A stretch of DNA of 63,934 nt, counting the filler, from Ministeria vibrans ATCC 50519 (taxonomy: Eukaryota > Protista > Filasterea), in assembly GCA_943704425.1 (NCBI GenBank). It is 7 parts of 7 records of this genome, joined end to end, with 100 filler letters (N's around TTAATTAATTAA, not from the genome) between each part and the next. Parts side by side here need not be neighbours in the genome. Positions count along the whole stretch, not along the records: positions 26,945 to 53,427 come from CALSCP010001493.1; 6 more parts are not named here. One strand, 5' to 3'. A program made the position numbers and the translations under genes. Positions 26,983-47,104 of the stretch are shown in pieces. The notes under the pieces are model-generated. The model was given only the letters and a program-made list of their open reading frames with translations, was not told where the DNA came from and did not search any database. The first letter of the stretch is position 1. The number at the start of each line of letters is the position of its first letter.

Positions 26983-29276
26983 TCATTGGGTCGTCTTCTT
27001 AAAAAGACGATTAATGTCGACAACAGAGGCGAGCGACAGCATCGCATGTTGGTAGGCTTTGATGGAGGAGATGGAATAGGTCGCTTCTTCTGGTGTCGCC
27101 GCACGCTTAATCATAAACTGGTTGCGCGCAAAGTCGAGAGCGCACACGACGGCGGGCGGGTCTCGCAGACCCAGAGTGCGTAGTGCTCCCAGCTCGAGGG
27201 TCGGGCGGTGGGCGGGGACCACGTCGCACTCGAACATGGATAGTGTCGGTTGAACTGGGTGAGTAGGTGGCAGTTGCTGCGAGCGTATTTGGCGAACCGT
27301 GTCATCACCGAGACGAAAGGTGAAGCGACGCTCTCGACGACGGATACACACACGCGACGACGGGCCCAACACGGAGAAGCGCGTGTCGTCTGGCACACCG
27401 CCGAAGAGCACGCCCACATTAATGAGGCCCACTCGCTGTCCGTGCACCGTCGTGAAGCGCGACTCGTAATGTCCGGCACGGTTGCTGTACTGCACTCCAT
27501 CGAGTGTGTTCGCCCCACACCGCTCCGCCACCACCACATGCGGCACTGCCGCTCCATACTGGGCGTTCCACACCGCCACACCACCCATAATGCCTCGCGC
27601 ACACTCCAGTCGCTCAGCAAGCGTTCGCTTCCCGTCGCCCAGAATCTCGGCACCCGAGGCAAGGCAGTCGAGTACAGTCCAGACACGCGAGGGGTGCTGC
27701 TGTTGCTGTTGCTGTTTCGATTGTTGTGCATCGCAAGGCAGCACATCAGGGCCCGACGACTCCACCACGAGGAATACCGTCGCGCGGGGCAGCGTTACAC
27801 AGGGCTCGGGGCGCGTGTAAAGCATGCCCTGTTCACGTTGCGACTGCTCCAATGGCACAAAGTACGTCGTGGTCAACGTGTGATCGCCGTGGAAACCCAT
27901 AACGCCCGACACAAGCAGACCCAGACGGCCACGAGGCAACAACAGCGGCTCCGATAACATAGGCGGTTTGCCCTGGTTGTTCACGCTGAGATCGCTGATC
28001 GCAGGCGTGAGGTACACGTTACGCATGGAGAGACGGCACGCGTCGAGCAGAAAGTGCAGCATGGGCCGGAGAGGCTCGGCAAAGCGCCTCTCTAGGCACC
28101 CCTTGTCGTCGGGAATACGCCAACGACGCAACGCCGCAAGTCGCACGGCTGCTTGGTCAACGGGCGGCGCCAGGTTGAGGTCACGATAGTAGCGCGACAG
28201 GTCCTGCAACGCAACCACCTGTCCCTTAATCTGGCGCTCGTTGGTCCGGCGAATGTACTCGGTGAGAGTCGTGGCGCCGCGCACCGCCTCCAACGGCACC
28301 ACCGACACAATATCGCGCACTCGCGCCGACATGGGCAGACTAGAAGGGCGTTCAAGCGAGCGCAGACGGTCTTGGACCGACAAAAGGTACTGCACAACGG
28401 GCGGAGAGCGCACAACAAACCCGCGACAAACAATGTAACGCTCGCTGTTGGCCGGACGCGACTGTACGGGCTTGATGATCGCCACCGAGTCAAAGTGCAG
28501 GTACATCAGGTAAATCATGCTCACGGTAAACTCGGTAAACACGTCAAAGATTTTGCAGACAAACGAACCGCCCTACGACAATATTGAGTGGGAATAAGTC
28601 AGACATTGCGATGAAAGCCTCTTACGGCTCTGAGGGTCGCCAGCGCAGAGAGAAACTGACCCACAAGAATGTGCTTGCTCAGCCACTCTTGACGATTCTC
28701 CTGGCCATCCACCGAGATGCCACCGTCGGCCATAAGCAGCGCAAGGCCACGGTGGCGAGTGCCGCGCGCAACAGACTCGGCAAAGGCACGCACATTGTCG
28801 CTGAAGGTGACATCGCCGTCGTTTTGCGAACCACTGCCGCCAGCAGGACTCTTGTACGGGCGACTGTGCTGTCGTGTATCCACTGATGTTAGATTTGATG
28901 ATTTTGATGCTGGTGCTGGCGATGATGCTGACGGTGGTGCTGCTGCAGCAGACGTTGACTCTCCTGCAGACGAGGCTGTTGCTGCAGCAGATTTTGACTC
29001 TCCTGCAGACGAGGCTGATGTTGGTACTGCCTCTGTGGTGTGGTGTACAGGCAAAACGGGCACATCATTCGGTCCGTACACCCGATAGAAGGTCTCCACG
29101 GGCGTCTCTGTGTTGCCCTTGTTCAGTTTGAAGTCTAAATCACCGGCCAGTGTGAAGCCCCATCCGCGCGCCAGTCCCTTCCGTCGCCAGTACACATACT
29201 CTGTAAACCCACCAGGCCCTAAACCCCAGACACACCAAATGAATCCACAAACCCAGAAAAAAAACCAAATCACACA

Positions 29277-29352
<76 letters not shown>

Positions 29353-30430
29353 TACCAGCACACACATCGGCAAAGTAGAGCACATTGTGCTCCTCCGGCA
29401 ACAGTGGCAAAGATGTCAGATTCAAGTGCGCGTCCAGTTCGGCAATCTTAAGAGCGGCTCGATTCATAAAAATACCCTTGGCAATCGTTTCAAAAGGATT
29501 ACTTTGCGTTCGAGCCTAGAAGAGAGAACAACAAAGAAAAACGAATGAGGTTTGTGTTTGTACTTATTTTGTTCTTTTTTCTCTCCCGCTTCCTCGTACG
29601 TCGACAAAGCGCTTTCGGTCGGTGAGATTGTCAAGGGACGTTTTTGCAGCAAAGACGGCATTGATGCTGTCGGTAGAGCAATAGGGTGAGCCTGTGAGAG
29701 AGATGTCGGGCGACAGGTCTTCGACGACGGGTCCGTGTGAGTAGTCCATCGCCAGCAGGTCGTCGGCCGAGCGCGCCCCCGACACCCACTCGATTTCAAT
29801 CTCAAGGCCCCACTCACGCGCCTCCCATGTCTGTTCTTCTGCCACCACTCCGTCGCCGGTGACACCGAGACCAGCATTGCCAAGGCGCTGCTCAACACGC
29901 AGCGGCGCCGTCATGCCCTGCCCCTGCGCGCCCAGCCCACTGCCACTCGTGTAGTTCATTTTGCGCATCATGTTCAACACCTTGGGATTGACCGCGCCAG
30001 CAACGGCCTCGCCAGGCGCATCCACACCCGCACTCGCCGCCGCTGCCGCCGTCGCCGTCGCGTCTGGCTGTCTCTGCTGCTGTTTGTCGTCGCGCGCCTT
30101 GGCTTCGTCGCGCGTCATTCCAAGACCCATTTTGCGGTAGATCCCGCGCCGTTCGGGTCGCCCGGCGTCCTCCACATCGTCGTAGTCGACATCATTGCCG
30201 TCCTGGCTGTCGGCGGGGGGCGCTGGGAACGTCGGCAGGCTGGAGGGAGTGCCAAACGACGGACGGGTGTCAAAGTCGACGTCGTCATTGTCGTTCTCGT
30301 CGTCAAAGGCACTGCTGCCAACGCTGCCCTCCGCTGCGCCGCGACCAAACGACGTGTATGCTCCTCGCGATCGTTTCAGATCGGGGATGCCAGCGTCGTC
30401 GTGATCATCTTCGAGTTGTCTTTTCGACAT
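26983..30430 (-). CDS. CMTR1: Cap-specific mRNA 2'-O-methyltransferase 1 (G-patch plus FtsJ-like MTase plus degenerate C-terminal domain)
   Basis: G-patch VLNMMRKMNYTSGSGLGAQGQGMTAPL...GLG; MTase motifs MNRAALKIAELD, YFADVCAG|PGGFTEYV, GWGFTL, LMADGGISVDGQENRQE, FVCKIFDVFTEFTV and KPVQSRPANSERYIVC. Confidence 0.95.
29279..29349. repeat. (CA)n microsatellite in a CMTR1 intron
   Basis: Directly visible. Confidence 0.95.
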
Positions 30431-33357: not shown

Positions 33358-36300
33358 ATGTCACGAGTAAGCCTGGGTGTGCGCTGCCTCCCCTCCCCCC
33401 CCTCTGACCTGATTCTCCGTCGTCTAGGTTGTCCGATTCGATCCCAACAATGATCCGGCGTTGCGTCACTACAAAATTGGCAAAACACGTAAGATTGGCG
33501 CCGCTCCAACACCCACGCCCGTCCCCACACCACCCCAACGACACCCTGATCCTGCCTTCGAGTCGTCGCACACACGCACACTCTCATACACACTCACACA
33601 CACTCACTCACATAAAAAAGACATCACTCAATGTGACTCTTCAACTCAATCCACACTCCCCGCCGCCCCCTCCTCCGATCGCACATGCTCTCTAACCCTC
33701 CCTCTCTCCCATCCAGTGGGCGAAGGGTCCTTTGCCAAGGTCAAACTCGCCACTCACATTCTCACGCAGAAAAAGGTAACTTGCCATGTCATCTTTTGGC
33801 TCTCTCGCTTCTCCGCTGTCCGATTTCCCCCGGCGTTGCCTTACCCCCTGTGTTTTTGCCACGTCTATCGCTGTGCTGCGTGTGTGCGCCTCAGCACTGT
33901 CTCTCTTATTTTTCATACGTCATTCGATTTTTTTTTTTGTCGTTTTTTGCTCTTGATCACTCTATTGAGAGCACCCGTCCATGTGAGCATGCGTGCCCAT
34001 GCCTCTTGCGCCGGCCGCGGTGCTGTTTCGGTGCGCGCAAAGGGCCCGTGAGGGCTCTTCTGTCGCTTATCTCAAGTTCCTCCCTCGCCGCTCTCCTGCG
34101 GCCCCCCCGCGACGCTGCTTGGCGTCCCCTGTTGCCTTGACGTCTACCACGGATTGCCTCGTCGAGGAGTTCCATGTCTCGTTGCGCTTCGCTCACTTTT
34201 TTTGGTTCTTTTTTTTTATTGTGCGTAGGTCGCATTGAAGATTCTCGACAAATTGGCCATCACCGACAAATATGTGTTAAAAAACATGCATCGCGAGGCG
34301 GAAATCATGCAGCGGTTGAACCATCCCAATATTGCAAAGATTTACGAGGTGATTGAGACGCCCGATCGCTACATTTTGGTGATTGAGCACTGTGGCGGTG
34401 GCGAAATGCTCGACTATATCATTACGCGCGATCGCCTGCATGAACGCGAGGCGCGCCGTTTTGTGCGACAAATTGCGTCGGCCCTCAACCACATGCACCA
34501 GAAGGGCGTGACCCACCGCGACATGAAGCCCGAGAACTTGCTGCTTGACGAACAGCTTAACGTCAAACTCATCGACTTTGGCTTGTCCAACATGTTTGAG
34601 GGCGAACAGCACAACTTGACGACACGCTGCGGCTCGTTCGAGTACAGCGCGCCCGAGCTCATTGGCGCCAAGCCCTACTTTGGGCCCGAAGTCGACTACT
34701 ACACCATGGGCGTCAACCTGTACGCCATGCTGACGGGCGAACTGCCCTTCCAGAGCGACAACATCTCAGTCGTCTACCGCCTCCAGCTCCGCGAGGAGTT
34801 CCCCATTCCTTTCTACCTTACAAACGGTAATCACACAAATAACAACAAGAAAAAAGAGGAACAACCACAAAAAGAGAGCCATGAGTGTGCCTCTTGTGAT
34901 CCTCTCGTGTCGCTTCGGGCGTTTTTGCCACTGTCCATTAAACAAAATTGTGTGTATTGTTTTGATCGTACAGATTGCCAGAACCTGATCAGACGGATGC
35001 TCAAGGCTGACCCACGCAAGCGAATTACGCCACAAGAGCTGGCGGAACACCCGTGGATCGTGGCGGGGGGCGGTGTGCTGGTGCCGCACGTCGAAGACGG
35101 GTACTTGGACACGGTGGACGAGGACGTTGCACAGGCTATGCTGGCCATGAATATGGCTGAGTCGATGGAACAGATCACCCAGTCGGTCCTCGAGCGCCGT
35201 CTTGACAAGACTTTTGCCACCTACCGCTTGCTCTACCCCGACATCCAGCGGGCGCGTCTGGAAATGGCGCACAGCGAAGAAGTGTCCATGTCGCCCGCCC
35301 TCCAAACGACTCGTCCCGTCTGGGCCGGCGCCATCCCCAACTACGACGAGCGCTGTGCGGCCGCCACCAGTGGCCCCGCACCCGTGCCCGCCATGAAGAA
35401 GGCGTACACAGTGGGCGTTGACCGCCACCAGATGAACCTCGACACGCCCGCCGAAGCACTTCCTGTCTTCTCGCTGGGACTTGAGCAGCACACCACGAAC
35501 GAATCGGCCGGCATGGAGGCTCTCAAGGCCGCCCAGGCTGCTGCCGCCGCTGCCGAGCAGCAGCAGCAGCACATGCTTGTGGCTGCTGCCGAGGCTGCGG
35601 CCGCCGAGAGTGGCGGTGGCATTGCCATGGCTGTGTCTGAGGTGGAGCAGGAGCAAGCGCACATAATGGACATGGAATCAGATGTGGCAGTCGCCGCCAC
35701 GCCCGCCGACGCAACTACTGGCGACGATGGGCCGCCGCAGTTTTCCATGCTGGGTGGAGCTATGCTGGGCGACGGTGCGGCAGGCGGGACCCTGGGCGAG
35801 GGTCTGTCGTTTGGCCTCGAGGGCGGTCTGGGCGCCGTCGGTGGCTTTGGCTTTGGCAACAGTGTGCCGGTGGAGGCGGAGGAGGCCGAGCCGCGTGGAC
35901 TGATGGAGATGGCGCGCGAGAAGGAAAAGCAGGACAATGAGATGCAGCAGCAGCAGCAGCAAATGACCTCATCCGGCTCATCGCCAAACGGCAGCTCGTC
36001 GCCGGCCTCTGGCCCGGGCAACGGCACCGCTCGCAAGGGCAAGACGGGTCTGTTCAGCAACCTGCTCGACAAGATGCCAGGTGGCATTGCGCGCGTCATG
36101 GGCATGAAGCGCGCCGCCACCATTGAGGTGGACTTCTCCAGCCGTGTGTTGCCCATCGATCGCGGACGCTTTGACGCGGCGCAGAACCAGCAGCAAAGCA
36201 TGCAAGGGATGGACAGCGGCGAGTCGAGTGCGCGCAACTCGCCGACGCTTGACGAATCGGCGGCCGCTGCGTCGGGCAAGTCCAAGCGCAACAAGAAGGA

Positions 36301-36619
36301 GAAGAAAGAGAAGGGTCCCACGCAGAAGTTGCAGTCGGCGCGTTTTGCCCTCTCCTGCCAGACCATCTCGGCGGAGAAGCCTGCAGTGATCCTGGACGCA
36401 GTCAAGGCAGCGCTCGCCAGCAACGACGTCGCGTTCTCGCCCGTCGCCGACAACGAGTTCATGTTGTCGTGCACAGACAAACGCATGCGCTTCGAGGTCG
36501 AGGTATGTAAGATTCCCGGCCTGCGCGACATGAACGGTGTGCGATTCAACCGCATTGCTGGAGAGATGTGGTACTACAAGGACCGCAGTCGCAAGATTGT
36601 CAACTCGATGAAGCTGTGA
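33358..36619 (+). CDS. CAMKL-family (MARK/HUNK/MELK-like) Ser/Thr kinase with UBA-like and C-terminal KA1 domains, 5 exons
   Basis: YKIGKTLGEGSFAKVKLATH, VALKILDK, HRDMKPENLLLD, DFGLSN and TRCGSFEYSAPE; KA1 RFEVEVCKIPGLRDMNGVRFNRIAGEMWYYK. Confidence 0.93.
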
Positions 36620-37530: not shown

Positions 37531-40500
37531 TTACTTTTTACTTTCGAGAACATGAAGGGCACCTTTCGCATTGTGAGACCCCGAGGCTTCCATTGCAGAC
37601 AAGAGAGGAAGAGCACCTGCGCGTGCAATCGTCACTTTGTTGTCAGTGTTGACGGCCAGGTTCCACAGCGCACCCACCGCATTCTCCTTGGCAGTGTCAG
37701 TTCCACCGCGCAACACAGCAATCAGTGGCTCAATCGCACCTGCGCGTGCAATCGTCACTTTGTTGTCAGTGTTGTTGGCCAGGTTCCACAGCGCACCCGC
37801 CGCATTCTCCTTGGCAGTGTCAGTTCCACCGCGCAACACAGCAATCAGTGGCTCAATCGCACCTGCGCGTGCAATCGTCACTTCGTTGTCGGTGTTGACG
37901 GCCAGGCTCCACAGCGCAGCCGCCGCATTCTCCTTGGCAGTGTCAGTTCCACTGCGCAACACAGCAATCAGTGGCTCAATCGCACCTGCGCGTGCAATCG
38001 TCACTTTGTTGTCGGTGTTGACGGCCAGGCTCCACAGCGCACACGCCGCATTCTCCTTGGCAGTGTCAGTTCCACTGCGCAACACAGCAATCAGTGGCTC
38101 AATCGCACCTGCGCGTGCAATCGTCACTTTGTTGTCGGTGTTGAGGGCCAGGTTCGCCAGCGCAGCCGCCGCATTCTCCTTGGCAGTGTCAGTTCCACTG
38201 CGCAACACAGCAATCAGTGGCTCAATCGCACCTGCGCGTGCAATCGTCACTTGGTTGTCACTGTTGTTGGCCAGGTTCCGCAGCGCACACGCCGCATTCT
38301 CCTTGGCAGTGTCAGTTCCACTGCGCAACACAGCAATCAGTGGCTCAATCGCACCTGCGCGTGCAATCGTCACTTGATTGTCAGTGTTGTTGGCCAGGTT
38401 CCACAGCGCACCCGCCGCATTCTCCTTGGCAGTGTCAGTTCCACCGCGCAACACAGCAATCAGTGGCTCAATCGCACCTGCGCGTGCAATCGTCACTTCG
38501 TTGTCGGTGTTGACGGCCAGGCTCCACAGCGCAGCCGCCGCATTCTCCTTGGCAGTGTCAGTTCCACTGCGCAACACAGCAATCAGTGGCTCAATCGCAC
38601 CTGCGCGTGCAATCGTCACTTTGTTGTCGGTGTTGAGGGCCAGGTTCGCCAGCGCAGCCGCCGCATTCTCCTTGGCAGTGTCAGTTCCACTGCGCAACAC
38701 AGCAATCAGTGGCTCAATCGCACCTGCGCGTGCAATCGTCACTTGGTTGTCACTGTTGTTGGCCAGGTTCCGCAGCGCACACGCCGCATTCTCCTTGGCA
38801 GTGTCAGTTCCACTGCGCAACACAGCAATCAGTGGCTCAATCGCACCTGCGCGTGCAATCGTCACTTGANNNNNNNNNNNNNNNNNNNNNNNNNNNNNNN
38901 NTGGCCAGGTTCCGCAGCGCACACGCCGCATTCTCCTTGGCAGTGTCAGTTCCACTGCGCAACACAGCAATCAGTGGCTCAATCGCACCTGCGCGTGCAA
39001 TCGTCACTTGGTTGTCGGTGTTGAGGGCCAGGTTCCGCAGCGCACACGCCGCATTCTCCTTGGCAGTGTCAGTTCCACTGCGCAACACAGCAATCAGTGG
39101 CTCAATCGCACCTGCGCGTGCAATCGTCACTTTGTTCTCGGTGTTGACGGCCAGGTTCGCCAGCGCACCCGCCGCATTCTCCTTGGCAGTGTCAGTTCCA
39201 CCGCGCACCTCACTGATAATCAACGTCAGTTCTTGCTCGGACACGTTCGTCTTCATCGCTTCCGCCACCGACAGAGTTGCCAGTCTTTTCATTAAACCAA
39301 TCAGCTCTGCACAACCCCAAAACGCAAATCAGATTCATTGATTACTCAATCACTTACCAGCGCTAACAGGAACTACGCCAGGATTGACACCGTTTGACGA
39401 TGCAACAACTACCTCTCCACTGACTGGCTTGCTCGCAACAGACCCTAAAAGAAAACGGATACATCAACAGACTAATTTCGCTCTCCATTTGCTCACCCAT
39501 CATCTGCAGTGCCATCTCATCGCATGACGGACGCGCTTCTGGCTTGACTGCAAGACACGCTCGCGCCAACTCCCGCACATCCAACGGCAGCAGTGCAAAG
39601 TCCACTGGTGGAGAGTGCTCGCGCATGGCCGCTCTCGCCTGCTCGTCGCTCATTCCGTCAAACGGTCGCTTTCCGCTGAACAGCTCGCACACAATCACGC
39701 CCAGTGAGTACACATCTCCCGCCCGCGAGTACACCGCCTGTGTCCCGACAACCAGCTCGGGCGCCATATAGCGCATTGTGCCCGCTCCTCCCTTGGCCGT
39801 CGACTCGGAACGGTACTTGCTGCCCTCTTTGGCGCGCGCCAGACCAAAGTCAACAATAATCGGGTCAATGCTGCTCTCCGTCAGAAACATAATGTTGCTC
39901 GGCTTGAGGTCACGGTGGATAATGGGGTTGAGCTGGTCGAGGTGCAGGTAGCGAAGTGCGCCGACAATGCAACGCAGAATGTGTCGCTGAACGCTGTCCG
40001 TGAGCGCTTGTGTGTGGATGCGCTTGTCGAGACCGCCGCCTTGCAGTTGCGCCATCACCAATCGTAGACGCACACCTCCGTTGGCGTTCGTCTTGGTTGC
40101 GTACCCGATCATGCGAATGACGCCCTTGTGCGAGAGGGGTCCGACCATCTCGACTTCGCGACGCACACTCTCAATGGTCTCCGTCGCACCAAGCACAATC
40201 TGCTTCACGGCGACCGGCTCAGCGTCCAGCGTACCCGCGTACACAACACCAAACGACCCGCGCCCCAGCTCAACCTCTTCGTCGTCGTCGTCCTTGCATA
40301 TCTTGATGTCGCGCCAAGGAATTTCCCATTTCTCCGACACGGAAAATTGGCTCACATCCACCGACGGCCGCAGTTGCTTGAGTGTAGCGCTGATGTTGCG
40401 CATGTCCTCCTCGTGAGCCTTTGCCATGGCTGCCCGCTCGGCTGCTGCGCTGTTGGCCAGCTCAATGTGGAGATCGTTGACGGCCGTTGACAAGTGTTCG

Positions 40501-40790
40501 GTAACGACGCAAAACGCTGTCTGAAAGGTACCGCCACGCACAAGACGTCCGAACAGGCTCTTCTCGTTGTGTTCCGTGATGATCTGCAGGGAAGCCTCGA
40601 GCGCACAGTGCAGGCGGCCCAGCAAGAGTCCTTCCGTGTGTTTGCTTCGTTGCTTTTTCAGCGCTTCTGAAATCGCGTCGACGCGTGCAGAGAGCGCCCG
40701 GCACTGCGCCGCATTGCCTTTGACCGTTTCGAGTGCCTGGTGGATCGCTTGGGCAATCTTAAAAATGGCCGAGAGTGCTTGTTCAGCCAT
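37531..40790 (-). CDS. MLKL-like four-helix-bundle + Ser/Thr (TKL/RIPK-like) kinase + armadillo-repeat protein, 3 exons
   Basis: N-terminus IFKIAQAIHQALETVKGNAAQCRALSARV...LGRLHCALEASLQIITEH...FGRLVRG...F...L resembles the MLKL N-terminal domain. Kinase motifs LGRGSFGVVY, VAVK, HRDLKPSNIM, DFG and GTMRYMAPE are intact. GT-AG introns 39445-39496 and 39307-39357 join the kinase in frame to the ARM array. Confidence 0.9.
37613..39207 (-). repeat. Coding tandem array of 123-bp (41-aa) armadillo repeats, at least 13 units, interrupted by a 32-N gap
   Basis: Unit AKENAAxALxxLAxNxDNxVTIARAGAIEPLIAVLR[S/G]GTDT, near-identical at DNA level. Confidence 0.97.
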
Positions 40791-40940
40791 AAGGAATTAA
40801 AGGAAAAAATAAATTGATTTTTCCTGAAAAAAAATTATAATTATTCTAATAAATTTATTATTAATAATAATAATAATAATAATAATTATTAGTATTATTA
40901 TTATTCTTAATAATAATTCCTTAAAACTTATTTTACGCCT

Positions 40941-43900
40941 TTACAAAAGATCGCGAATGCGAACGGTCCGCCTCACGGCATTGGTGAAACCTTCGTGGAA
41001 CTTGAACATAATAGTGGGTGGAGGAGGTGCTTGGCCTTGCTCGTCGTCGTCCTCGCCCATGTCCTCGTCGGCAGTGTCACTCTGTGCCACCGCACTCTCC
41101 TGTGTCGCCTCCACAAGACGCCCAAAAAAGTCTCTCTCCACCTTGGGCTCAATCTTGACTTTTTTAGCCATGGACGCAGCAGTGGTGCCCAACTCAACAA
41201 TACGTCGTTTGCTCGCCGTCAGCGCTTTCTGCCTTTCACTCTCGCCCAGCCCACTACCACCTGCTCCCCCCGCCCCTTTCACCACCATCGTCTTCCCACC
41301 ACCACCACCACTACCTGCACTCCCAACCATCCGCCGGTGCGTCAGCGCATGTGCAATGTACTGTCGAAGCACGTACGGCAGCTTCCGGTGCGTGTTAGGC
41401 AAGTCAGGAAACATCACGGCACTTTCAAAGTCGCTGGTAAAAAAATCCGTGTCAGATACACCAATTCAATTTGCCTGGCACACAAACACTCAACCCTAAA
41501 CACACTGAACACATACTAAACACACTAAACACACACTAAACACACTTAAAACACACACACACACACACACACACTCGGCACACGAAAAAAAAACACACAC
41601 ACACGCATATAAAATATTACTATCTCTACTCTTACGGTTCCATTGTGTAAAAGTACTGACTTTCCTGCCCTTTTTTCTGCGCATACGTAAGCGAAAACAT
41701 ACTCATGACATTGACCAGTTGCTCGAGTGTCTCCTTCTCTTGCGCATTGTACAACTGAGTGTTGACCTGACACACAAGAAGAAGAAGAAGAAGAAAGCGA
41801 GTGAGTGTGAGGGAGCGAATAAGAAACAAGTGGACACTATACAGGTCTGAGAGTGGGCGAGAGCAGATCAAGAAAGTGAGGAGCGCAGTCGAGAACAAAT
41901 GCACGAGGGGTGAAGAGAGCACGGATGCGAGCGCGTGCAGACCCGCCACCGACATCGCGCGCACCCGAGCCGTCGTCGTCGAGACCCAGCATCATTGCAA
42001 TAGTTGACTCGGTCTGGCGTTGATGCTGCTGTGCGGCCGTAAACGACGTCGGATAACGCAGAAAGGGCGCTCGTTGCCGCATGTTAGTGTGTGCTTGAGT
42101 GCAATGCTGCGGGTTGTGTGTGTGTGTGTGAGCGAAACGTCCGTGACATACATCTTAATATTTGCGCATTACCAGATGAACAGCGGCTGAGACAAACGGA
42201 AGAAAGCGCATGAGATTGAATTGTTGGGAGCGATGAATCCGCTCGGTGAGTATGTCGTGCAAATGAAGCCACTCGGTGACATCCACAAGCTAAAAGACCG
42301 ACTTATAAGTACACAGAGACTCGCCCACACTCAAATTTTATGTGTTTCTTTGTGCATACCGTTTGCAATGGGCTTGTAAACTGTCCATAGGTCAGACCCA
42401 AATAGTTCTCAAAGCACCCTAACAACGACAAGAAAAACGACACACACACACACAACAATACACACACACACACAACAATCAATCAACCCCCCCTTCAGCT
42501 CTGCACTCTCGTTCTGCGTACCCTTGGCAATGCGATCATAATCATCTGCGCCGCCCCCCACCAAATCCACCACATCCATGACAATGCGTTTCTTCGTGCC
42601 CTTGCGTGTGCGACTACCCCCACTCTTTCCGCTCTCCAGCTCCTCTGCACCCTTGATGCGCGCACCACTCGGCGTCGAGAACACCGTGTTGAGCAGCGCA
42701 AAAAGGTCCTTTTGTCCGGCGTCCTTGCGCCCAATCGGAACTGCGCGCAGTGCCTCGAGCGTGACCACTGCATCGTTCTGACCCGTCCCACTTGTCAGCA
42801 GTTCATGTTTGCGCTGCATAAACTGAAGTGTGTGCAAACACGACCGAATGTCGTTGCCCGTCAGCTCAGCCAATCCCACAAGCGCACGTCGCTCCACACT
42901 CAGTCGCTCACTCTCACAAATGAACTTTACAGAGCGAGGAAGAGAAAGAAAGAAGAAAAAAAACCAAAAGCGTTTGTTAGAGAGCGAAGAAGACAATGCA
43001 TCGATTGATAAAGCGAAGAAAAATTTTTCGCTCTTATCCATCAATCTCACCTGTAATCGATCAATCAGCACATTTTGAGCAGTGGGCTTCATCTGCAACA
43101 CAAGCGCCACTTTCCTCAGTGACCTCAAAGAAGGAGCAAACCTACGCCATGACACACTGAGACATCTGCACTTCGAAGTTCGATTTGAAAATTGTCGTAC
43201 AAATCATTGCAAATGCAAATGATAGGCCTGCGCAATTGACCCGCTCCCGTCGCTTTCTTTCCCCCTTTGCTCTTTTTGTTGGACGTGCGTCCCTCAATGT
43301 GCGACAGTAGAAATGCAATGCACGCCTGAAACGTCCGTGAGTCAGACTAAGACCACCATGACAAATATATGTTGTTACCTTTGTGGTTCCATCAATTTCG
43401 TCAATGATAAGACAGTTTGGACGTGTGTCTTTGCTTGTGACAGAGCGCATTTGAGTCGCAGCAACAACAGTATTGCGAAAGAGCTCCTCCGCGCGATCAT
43501 CACTACGTGCAACTCGTCAGGTGAGTCGGTACAGTCAGTTGAGTGTACGTACCTCGCGTTCATCTCAACGGGATGGTAGCCGCAGTGGACAGCACACACA
43601 TGCGCCAGAGTGGTTTTGCCCAGCCCGGGAGGTCCGCTGAGCAGAATGACGCGCGGCATGGGCCGATGGTGCACGTCGGAAGGAGCCGAACTCGCACCCG
43701 TATACGGCGCACGCCCGCCACTGCGACTGTTGCTCCCGTGGCCGCTGCTGTTGTTGCTCCGAAACACCCCGCTGGCGCCTTTGGTGCTCCCAGCACCTTG
43801 CACTGCATCACTCTCCTACGCAGATAGAGAGAGTACTCTCTTCAGCACACACACGCGCGCGCTCTCTCACACATCATATCGTCTTACGCGTGGTTTCATA

Positions 43901-45556: not shown

Positions 45557-46916
45557 TTATGCGTTCGAGAGAGAGTCGATAAACTCTATACCCTCAAACT
45601 TCTCCGCAATGACAAACTCCTCCTTGAGCAGCACATTTCCGTCCGTATCCACAATTGTCACATACGACGCAACCACATCCACTTCACCTGTTGTCCAGTC
45701 GGTCACTTCCTCCGTCTTCAGCGCAATCAGTTCACGGTCGTCCGTAAACGGAATCGCCTTGAACGAACTGAACCCCCTCTGAAGGTTCAGGTCGCCCACT
45801 TTCACTCGTCGGATCTACATTGAAGGGAAAGCGTTAAGGCAAATCAAGACAGACAGACAGACAAGCAAACAGACGGAAAATAAGACAGACGGACGGACAA
45901 AGTGAGGCAGAGTCAGAAAAACAAAGTGTAAAAACAACAATAGAATGCGTTTCTTTCGCCCACACGGTATTTCTTTCTCTCGTATCGTACGGTTGTAAAC
46001 GACTCGTCGGTCATCAACAGATCGTTTCCACAGCGCGCTTCGTCCTTGCGCTCACAGTACGCCTCAGTGCTGACTCGGCGCGGCAGAAACAGCCACTCGC
46101 GTCGCACTTGGCTCCAAATGGCACTCTCGTGCAACAAATAGCCCGGATACGACGTGCCGGTCGACACTCGCAGCGCCTCGTACTCGTTTATCCAGTTGAT
46201 GTGTCGGATTTGACCCGACGTGTCAATCGTCTAAGTAACGCACAATGAACCGTCATGTCACTCTCTCCTCGCTTAGCTGTACCTTGATCCACTGCGGATT
46301 CAGATGCACAATGTTCCCTTTCAGATCGGCCCATTCTTTGCCCATGCCACCGACCACAAGTTGTCCGTCCTTTACGGTCATCCACTCTGCTTTGAAGCCT
46401 GACACAAACACACACACAACGTGTCACATCACCACACTAATAATATTATAACAATATGATTAAGATGTGTCTGTGTGTCTTACCTTTCGCCACTTCTCCA
46501 CTGCCGTCTGTGAGCATGAAGCGTGGCACCGCCGTGGCCGTGTCCACGTTGATCTCAAAGACCGTTCCGGAGCGATCATCGACTGAGTAGAGACGACCGT
46601 TCCACACACACAGATCAGACAATTCCATTCCGCGTCCCTTCTCCGACAGCGTCGACGAGACGACGCGAGGAGCGTCAAGGTTGTCCCACTCCAGCGCATA
46701 CGACCCGTTGCTGCGGCGCACCAGCGTGCCCGTGATCAGCCACGAATGCCATTCGAATGAATCGCTCACTCGCGATCGAATGTCCTTATCCGCAATAATC
46801 GCAATCCGATAGCGCACCTCGCCCGCCAGACCATCCATCGCCGACGGCACATCAAACGCCCCAGATGCAGATGCAACAGCAGCAAGCGCGCTGAGCAGCA
46901 CAGCCACAGAGCGCAT
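45557..46916 (-). CDS. CANT1: Calcium-activated nucleotidase / apyrase (CANT1 family) with signal peptide
   Basis: [65 protein letters not shown] and KFEGIEFI. Confidence 0.95.
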
Positions 46917-47104
46917 CTCAATAATCACAAAGTAAAGTACAGTAATTATTTGATGATTTTGAAAAAATTTGATCTTGTCGAAATCGAAGATTAATTATTT
47001 TTTAATTACTTAATATTATCCTGATTTTTGTTTCGATGCTTTTTTTTGTTACTTTTGAGTCGATATTGTTGTTTGATCTTATATTTTGTTGAGTTTTGAT
47101 TCAT

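Follow-up and report, generated by a model that had tools for sequence, protein, structure and literature searches.

A candidate single-chain MLKL-family protein joining a four-helix bundle, a catalytically complete kinase and an armadillo array in the Ministeria vibrans assembly

A window of 63,934 nucleotides (nt) from the genome assembly of Ministeria vibrans ATCC 50519 (GCA_943704425.1), which is the whole stretch of DNA analyzed here and consists of seven parts joined with filler, was found to contain a gene of unusual composition. The gene lies on the minus strand at 37531-40790, within the 26-kb piece derived from CALSCP010001493.1 (positions 26,945 to 53,427), and its three exons encode a product of at least 1045 amino acids (aa). 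An MLKL_N-type four-helix bundle, a Ser/Thr kinase and an array of armadillo (Arm) repeats are joined in this product in that order. We read it as a one-chain MLKL-family protein that would unite a bundle, a kinase switch and an armadillo sensor, and we assign this reading a probability of about 0.5. The features of the gene are listed below.

40790-39497, minus strand: exon 1, 1294 nt, with the ATG at 40790
40446-40790, minus strand: codons 1-115, MLKL_N-type four-helix bundle (Pfam PF22215, AlphaFold model, VIA-align)
40296-40445, minus strand: codons 116-165, brace-like continuation of helix 4, with AHEEDM at aa 125 and WEIP at aa 155, leading into the kinase (model and motifs)
39513-40277, minus strand: codons 172-426, TKL-type Ser/Thr kinase (Pkinase, E-value = 1.6e-45)
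39496-39445, minus strand: intron 1, 52 nt, GT-AG (GTGAGC...TTTTAG), phase 1; skipped in the contigs of runs X1 and X2, present in the contig of run X6
39444-39358, minus strand: exon 2, 87 nt, a Ser/Val/Gly/Pro-rich linker from the kinase to the Arm array; joined on both sides in the spliced contigs
39357-39307, minus strand: intron 2, 51 nt, GT-AG (GTAAGT...GTGCAG), phase 1; skipped in the contigs of X1 and X2, present in that of X6
39306-37531, minus strand: exon 3, coding for an N-terminal cap, 12 or more near-identical Arm units of 41 aa each and a diverged cap at the C-terminal end, followed by the TAA (37531-37533)
38870-38901, no strand: assembly gap of 32 N within the Arm array

The family assignment is carried by the N-terminal part. 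All exons were searched separately, and the joined spliced protein was used for the frame check only. Exon 1 matches the Pfam family MLKL_N (PF22215) over aa 8-112 (E-value = 5.5e-10), scoring 39.4 bits against a curated cut-off of 27, and it gave no HeLo or RPW8 match in Pfam at E-values up to 0.1. When aa 1-165 were compared with the sequences of the Protein Data Bank (PDB), the top six matches were all MLKL, with weak E-values of 0.11-1. A HMMER search of 1.84 billion representatives recovered 27 relatives (best E-value = 1.9e-8, about 30% identity), every one of which contains MLKL_N. N26, L33 and R36 are invariant among these relatives, and their consensus, LxxIxxxAxxIxxxxxxVKxNxxQCxxLxxRV, contains the N-terminal pattern from which an earlier reading of this DNA (hereafter the original prediction) had proposed an MLKL-type domain. 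The motifs quoted in it, namely AHEEDM, WEIP, VAVK, HRDLKPSN and DFG, are all present.

In the AlphaFold model (pLDDT 85.8), the N-terminal part is composed of helices 2-22, 27-46, 54-76 and 79-84 and a long helix, 86-154. Foldseek ranked the MLKL N-terminal domain 2msv first, at an E-value of 0.017 and a TM of 0.55-0.59, and VIA-align gave Z-scores of 13.3 (6zz1) and 13.1 (6zvo), with an rmsd of 2.5 Å over 114 residues and 24% identity to MLKL, as well as 12.1 to AtMLKL2 and 11.8 to the CC-R domain of NRG1.1. Sequence identity is 21-27% to MLKL chains, versus mostly 5-15% to other bundles; because helical bundles have a high structural background, the homology call rests on the Pfam profile and on this identity to MLKL. 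A two-domain model of 431 aa (pLDDT 79.5) has full-length mouse MLKL (4btf) as its best match in the PDB (E-value = 6e-18), followed by BRAF kinase domains. The relatives have a brace region some 45 aa longer; here it is modeled as the single continuous helix 86-154, which carries the conserved acidic motif and in which a two-helix brace is not resolved. In the Pfam sense, then, the protein is quite probably a member of the MLKL family.

The kinase fold follows directly C-terminal to the brace, as in the MLKL family. Its catalytic motifs are G176-R-G178-S-F-G181, K196 (VAVK), E212, H292-R293-D294-L-K-P-S-N299, D314-F-G and A343-P-E. Judged by its sequence, the domain is a TKL-like kinase with the full set of catalytic motifs, and is presumably active; the earlier statement that VAVK, HRDLKPSN and DFG are intact can thus be extended to the G-loop, E212 and APE, and the protein is not a pseudokinase of the classical MLKL kind. 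Ser, Thr and Tyr all occur in the activation segment of 32 residues. Among solved proteins, a plant lectin-type kinase, ASK1, MLK1/MLK4 and RIPK1 are nearest by sequence and BRAF is nearest by structure. Another part of the original prediction, according to which the MLKLs of animals and plants carry a pseudokinase, has to be abandoned, since the wheat MLKL_NTD-kinase protein Pm13 is reported to keep all key catalytic residues (PMC10951266). An NLR reading of the gene was rejected, as Pfam found no NACHT or NB-ARC domain in any exon at E-values up to 0.1.

The structure of the gene was compared with public sequencing data. Runs were ranked with 39210-40800, and the contigs of four of them were aligned to 38910-41100. 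The contigs of X1 and X2, about 1.5 kb each, extend from 40784/40787 down to 39172/39178 with zero mismatches and omit 39307-39357 and 39444/5-39495/6 precisely, the ends being CT..AC on the plus strand. The contig of X6 (39179-40846), a DNA run from a separate study, retains both segments. Because the two introns are skipped exactly in the former contigs and kept in the latter, both are real, and their excision leaves the frame open through the start of exon 3. Two short phase-1 GT-AG introns within one open reading frame (ORF) had been predicted at the same coordinates. In the spliced contigs, a single molecule carries the kinase exon joined to the armadillo exon, of which it covers the first 129-135 nt. 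This evidence consists of contigs, not reads, and X1 and X2 come from one study and count as one source. The gene is spliced and apparently transcribed, and the three-part protein is, with high confidence, real.

Retention of intron 1 would carry the frame through 39363-39496 to a stop at 39363-39365 and give a hypothetical bundle-kinase protein of 475 aa that lacks the Arm array; an exact look-up of this unspliced ORF returned no record. None of the spliced contigs reaches beyond 40784-40787, at the ATG; the 5' untranslated region is therefore either very short or not seen. The spacer upstream (40788-40940) is AT-rich and of low complexity, with AAT/ATT runs, and the contig of the upstream gene in the probable RNA runs starts at 40922, about 20 nt beyond the stop codon of that gene.

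The third exon holds the armadillo repeats. Pfam Arm (PF00514) was recognized in two and ten stretches (E-values of 6.7e-22 and 3.6e-84, respectively), and TRF detected a 123-nt period with 95% matches. The exon begins with an N-terminal cap, continues with 12 units of 41 aa, each starting VTIARAGAIEPLIAVLR and one of them split by the assembly gap, and ends with the diverged C-terminal cap VTIARAGALPLLSAMEASGSHNAKGALHVLESKK. The array comprises at least 14 Arm repeats. The 11 complete units are 92.7-100% identical at the DNA level, with three identical pairs. Of the 13 variable nucleotide columns, 11 change the amino acid and two are silent. The variation is confined to codons 18-41, a clustering that is significant (P = 0.008), and the first 51 nt are invariant in every unit. 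Three states or two-base changes occur at codons 29 (C/A/G), 32 (R/A/W) and 36 (L/N/V), and codon 33 varies as well (N/S). With their i, i+3, i+4, i+7 spacing, codons 29, 32, 33 and 36 fall on one helix face, and codons 29 and 33 align to the Trp and Asn positions of the Pfam Arm profile. These positions, on Arm helix H3, line the ligand groove in importin-alpha and beta-catenin. The repeat types (CRNN, AANL, AWSV and GWNN at codons 29/32/33/36) recur every four units within 37613-39207, a pattern from which the array is taken to have grown through recent block duplication; to call it "hypervariable" would overstate the case.

This block duplication also explains the assembly gap. The two flanks of the gap fall in one and the same 123-nt Arm unit and lie on one strand: the left one ends one base into codon 36 of the unit (...ACALRNLA), and the right one picks up at base three of codon 40, continuing with QVTIARAG... 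As the repeat register would have it, the missing sequence measures 13 + 123n nt, that is, 1 mod 3, so that the frame is preserved to the TAA and the product of at least 1045 aa gains 41 aa per hidden unit. As written, the 32 N amount to 2 mod 3 where 1 is needed and would shift the frame, and for this reason a list of ORFs splits at the gap; the number of N is only an estimate, and says nothing about the real sequence. Short-read contigs break into pieces of 41-122 nt within the array. In the DNA run, the unitigs of the repeat core are 11-19 times as deep as those of the single-copy part, versus 13 assembled copies, and this depth gives no copy number. Antisense and off-frame ORFs of 490, 246, 210 and 163 aa (37552-39341, plus strand) are by-products of the stop-free repeat and not genes.

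Self-association of the N-terminal part is supported by structure prediction. Four copies of aa 1-165 gave a score of 0.71, compared with 0.00 for the best control. Among proteins solved as pairs of one chain, 21 of 30 came up to the mark used in this test; among those solved as single chains, none of 23 did. At least 74% of the contacts are shared between the runs, the pLDDT of the partners is at least 64, and helix 97-141 is predicted to form the interface by packing in parallel and in register.

From these features, and by analogy with MLKL and with the wheat MLKL R3AK, a possible mechanism can be drawn. At rest, the bundle would be kept inactive against the kinase and the brace, as in MLKL. 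A peptide-like ligand or a partner would bind in the armadillo groove, the binding would cluster several copies, and the kinase would phosphorylate its own Ser/Thr/Tyr-rich activation loop in trans. The brace helices would then zip into a parallel oligomer, and the freed bundles would act on the membrane. Pore formation, autophosphorylation, ligand sensing and a role in immunity are all putative in this scheme. That the protein acts on membranes, with or without killing, seems to us an even chance, and a role in defense or non-self recognition is rather unlikely.

The 27 relatives show how far this composition is shared. A kinase is present in 13 of them, most of which retain HRD/DFG-type motifs. 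Four (P0002, P0015, P0016 and P0021) have the order MLKL_N-kinase-Sel1, and one (P0017) is MLKL_N-Sel1, the kinase being absent. The closest architectural analogue found is P0011, an MLKL_N-kinase-LRR protein of 1134 aa encoded by a single exon in an ENA metagenome contig (L081:1483-4887, plus strand), with HRD and DFG and with a long LRR array of near-identical units; its N-terminal 200 aa, used as a query, recovered P0011 alone. The relatives named are those of the rotifer Adineta steineri and the grass Zizania latifolia. In the ESM Atlas, the exon-1 protein adjoins MLKL_N-kinase clusters of Basidiomycota and chordates, and also Mucoromycota and Streptophyta kinase clusters that are not annotated as MLKL_N. 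A word-indexed search with the exon-1 protein, in a length window of 237-754 aa that misses full-length kin, gave kinase-domain matches only (at most 36% identity among the strongest) and no close homologue. Likewise, a metagenome scan with the same protein gave 80 loci with generic kinase matches only, and no second copy of aa 1-165 was found by tblastn in those 80 loci or in the rest of the 26-kb piece. An armadillo-bearing relative was absent from the 27, and none was described in the literature searched.

Similar combinations have been reported. In wheat, besides Pm13, the MLKL R3AK, the Rwt3.6.8-associated kinase, kills through its bundle and shifts to a higher oligomer on activation (bioRxiv 10.64898/2026.08.07.743466). 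In fungi, certain HELL domains occur in fusion with a kinase or a pseudokinase domain (PMC12881547), and MLKL homologues with Sel1 repeats have been noted only in Glomeromycotina (PMC8778642). Because Pm13, the Glomeromycotina Sel1 fusions and the Sel1 and LRR relatives exist, the bundle-kinase-repeat plan is recurrent, and only the armadillo version is new here. The original prediction knew of no characterized protein of this architecture. The armadillo version was not found elsewhere in these searches, and the three-part plan recurs with Sel1 and with LRR in proteins that are likewise uncharacterized. Both an MLKL with a live kinase and an MLKL with a repeat array are on record, but only as observations of sequence.

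The known systems resemble the window protein to different degrees. No solved structure matches the bundle or the two-domain model better than vertebrate MLKL (4btf, 6zz1 and 2msv), in which an MLKL_N four-helix bundle is followed by a brace helix and a kinase fold. However, vertebrate MLKL is a pseudokinase, requires RIPK3 and ends after the kinase fold, whereas the window protein keeps the catalytic residues, adds a linker and at least 14 Arm repeats, and is only about 24% identical. Pm13 and R3AK share the fusion of an MLKL_NTD bundle to a kinase, but they lack a fused repeat array, sensing by R3AK is proposed to reside in a separate NLR, and neither is among the closest relatives found. 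The Glomeromycotina MLKL-Sel1 proteins and the five relatives with a kinase and Sel1 or LRR repeats have all three parts, MLKL_N, kinase and C-terminal solenoid; their repeats are not armadillo, however, and their N-terminal identity is about 27-31%. The fungal HeLo/HELL proteins, the bundle-NLRs and the plant CC-R NLRs (NRG1/ADR1) are likewise "all-in-one", with an N-terminal membrane-targeting helical bundle and C-terminal repeats, but the NLRs have a central NACHT or NB-ARC ATPase as the switch, to which the window protein shows no match. In LRRK2 and the other ROCO proteins, a TKL-group kinase and armadillo or LRR solenoids occur in one chain; unlike the window protein, these contain a ROC-COR GTPase, lack the MLKL_N bundle and carry the repeats N-terminal to the kinase.

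Several points weigh against the reading of a one-chain sensor, switch and effector. The functions of the window protein and of its tripartite relatives are all putative, and the RNA status of X1 and X2 is only a guess. The frame across the gap follows, on good grounds, from the repeat register and is not read from bases. On the structural side, an unrelated designed bundle scores Z = 12.9 in the same VIA-align list and the Foldseek E-value is weak; moreover, the pLDDT of the bundle is only 56-75 in the two-domain model, so that no docking onto the kinase is shown by it. The self-association test was calibrated on two copies rather than four, long helices pair easily, and the model may remember solved MLKL tetramers. 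As to the array, the excess of amino-acid-changing over silent columns (11:2) is not significant (P = 0.33), and positive selection on the repeats is not claimed; only four to five repeat types recur, which fits block duplication as well as diversifying selection. Finally, no immunity-related gene was found among the neighbors, and the term "immune" has no contextual support because the surrounding genes look like housekeeping genes.

The main rival explanation is that the protein is an ordinary TKL/MAP3K signaling kinase and not a killer, with the bundle and brace serving for oligomerization or for reversible recruitment to a membrane or the cytoskeleton and the Arm repeats serving as a substrate scaffold, like the repeats of other TKL kinases that bear them; this is quite possible, although short of probable. 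It would account for the intact catalytic residues, which classical MLKL lacks, for MAP3Ks (ASK1 and MLK1/4) and RIPK1 being among the nearest solved sequences, for the housekeeping-like neighborhood without local expansion, and for a predicted interface that is a plain parallel coiled coil. Animal MLKL itself also has a non-lethal role, in endosomal trafficking. However, in every case studied (animal MLKL, plant MLKLs and R3AK) MLKL_N is a membrane-acting executioner, and the conservation of the bundle across the relatives, with its three invariant residues, is more than would be expected of a generic coiled coil.

Two further alternatives are less probable. The protein might be a factor of allorecognition or kin discrimination, its Arm array recognizing a polymorphic partner of the same species with the same MLKL-like output. 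Fungal HeLo and HELL bundle proteins do control allorecognition death, the source is probably a filasterean-like holozoan and filastereans include aggregating species, and the variation of the Arm units lies on the groove face; but no partner gene occurs among the neighbors and the repeat types recur in blocks instead of varying freely, and we regard this alternative as improbable. Highly improbable is that the fusion is partly an artifact, the array beyond the gap being mis-assembled or coming from another locus and the true product being shorter or differently built. The gap does lie inside a tandem array of 92.7-100% identical units in which short-read contigs fragment, and the 32 N as written do break the frame. 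Against this, the kinase exon is joined to the first part of exon 3 in the spliced contigs, the gap flanks share unit, strand and register, and the diverged C-terminal cap and the stop codon stand in the same frame at the end of the array.

If the source is a filasterean-like holozoan, as the neighboring MELK/MARK-like kinase gene suggests, the one-chain MLKL-family protein would represent an MLKL-family gene near the root of the animals, in a form whose kinase is live and whose binding array is built in. None of the necroptosis regulators had a homologue in a survey of 67 protists, which considered the pathway to be likely exclusive to vertebrates (PMC7539657), and no paper mentioning both MLKL and Holozoa was found. 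Were the reading true, one chain would unite a sensor, a switch and an executioner that are split into RIPK3 and MLKL in animals and into an NLR and an MLKL in wheat. A bolder version is unlikely in our estimation: that this is a single-chain MLKL with a ligand-binding array, an autophosphorylating switch and a membrane-attacking bundle in a unicellular relative of animals, that vertebrate RIPK3 and the pseudokinase MLKL are a later split, and that regulated lytic death of the necroptosis type predates animals. Together with the Sel1 and LRR relatives, the window protein may belong to a widespread, unstudied "bundle-kinase-repeat" class, which could be a kinase-switched counterpart of the NLRs, and it could serve as a compact system for the control of an MLKL bundle by a kinase without a separate upstream kinase.

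The other genes of the 26-kb piece are as follows.

34235-36616, plus strand: adjacent ORF of 794 aa, MELK/MARK-like kinase with a C-terminal KA1 domain
26986-30430, 42412-43155 and 46449-46928, minus strand: C-terminal part of an FtsJ-type methyltransferase, a G-patch protein, an RFC1-like AAA lid fragment and an apyrase fragment

The best match of the MELK/MARK-like ORF is CAOG_08549 of Capsaspora owczarzaki (48% identity, E-value = 4e-108), followed in order by a Logan protein, a protein of EukProt "Opistho-1", which we take to be Pigoraptor, and animal MELKs; this single gene points to a filasterean-like holozoan as the source. The FtsJ, G-patch, RFC1-like and apyrase neighbors are probably exons of multi-exon housekeeping genes. 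A search of the 26-kb piece against Rfam gave no match. A contig of 154 nt from run X5, a seawater library that is labeled metatranscriptomic and flagged as probably DNA, is identical to 40586-40739 in the bundle-coding region, which suggests that the organism or a very close relative is marine.

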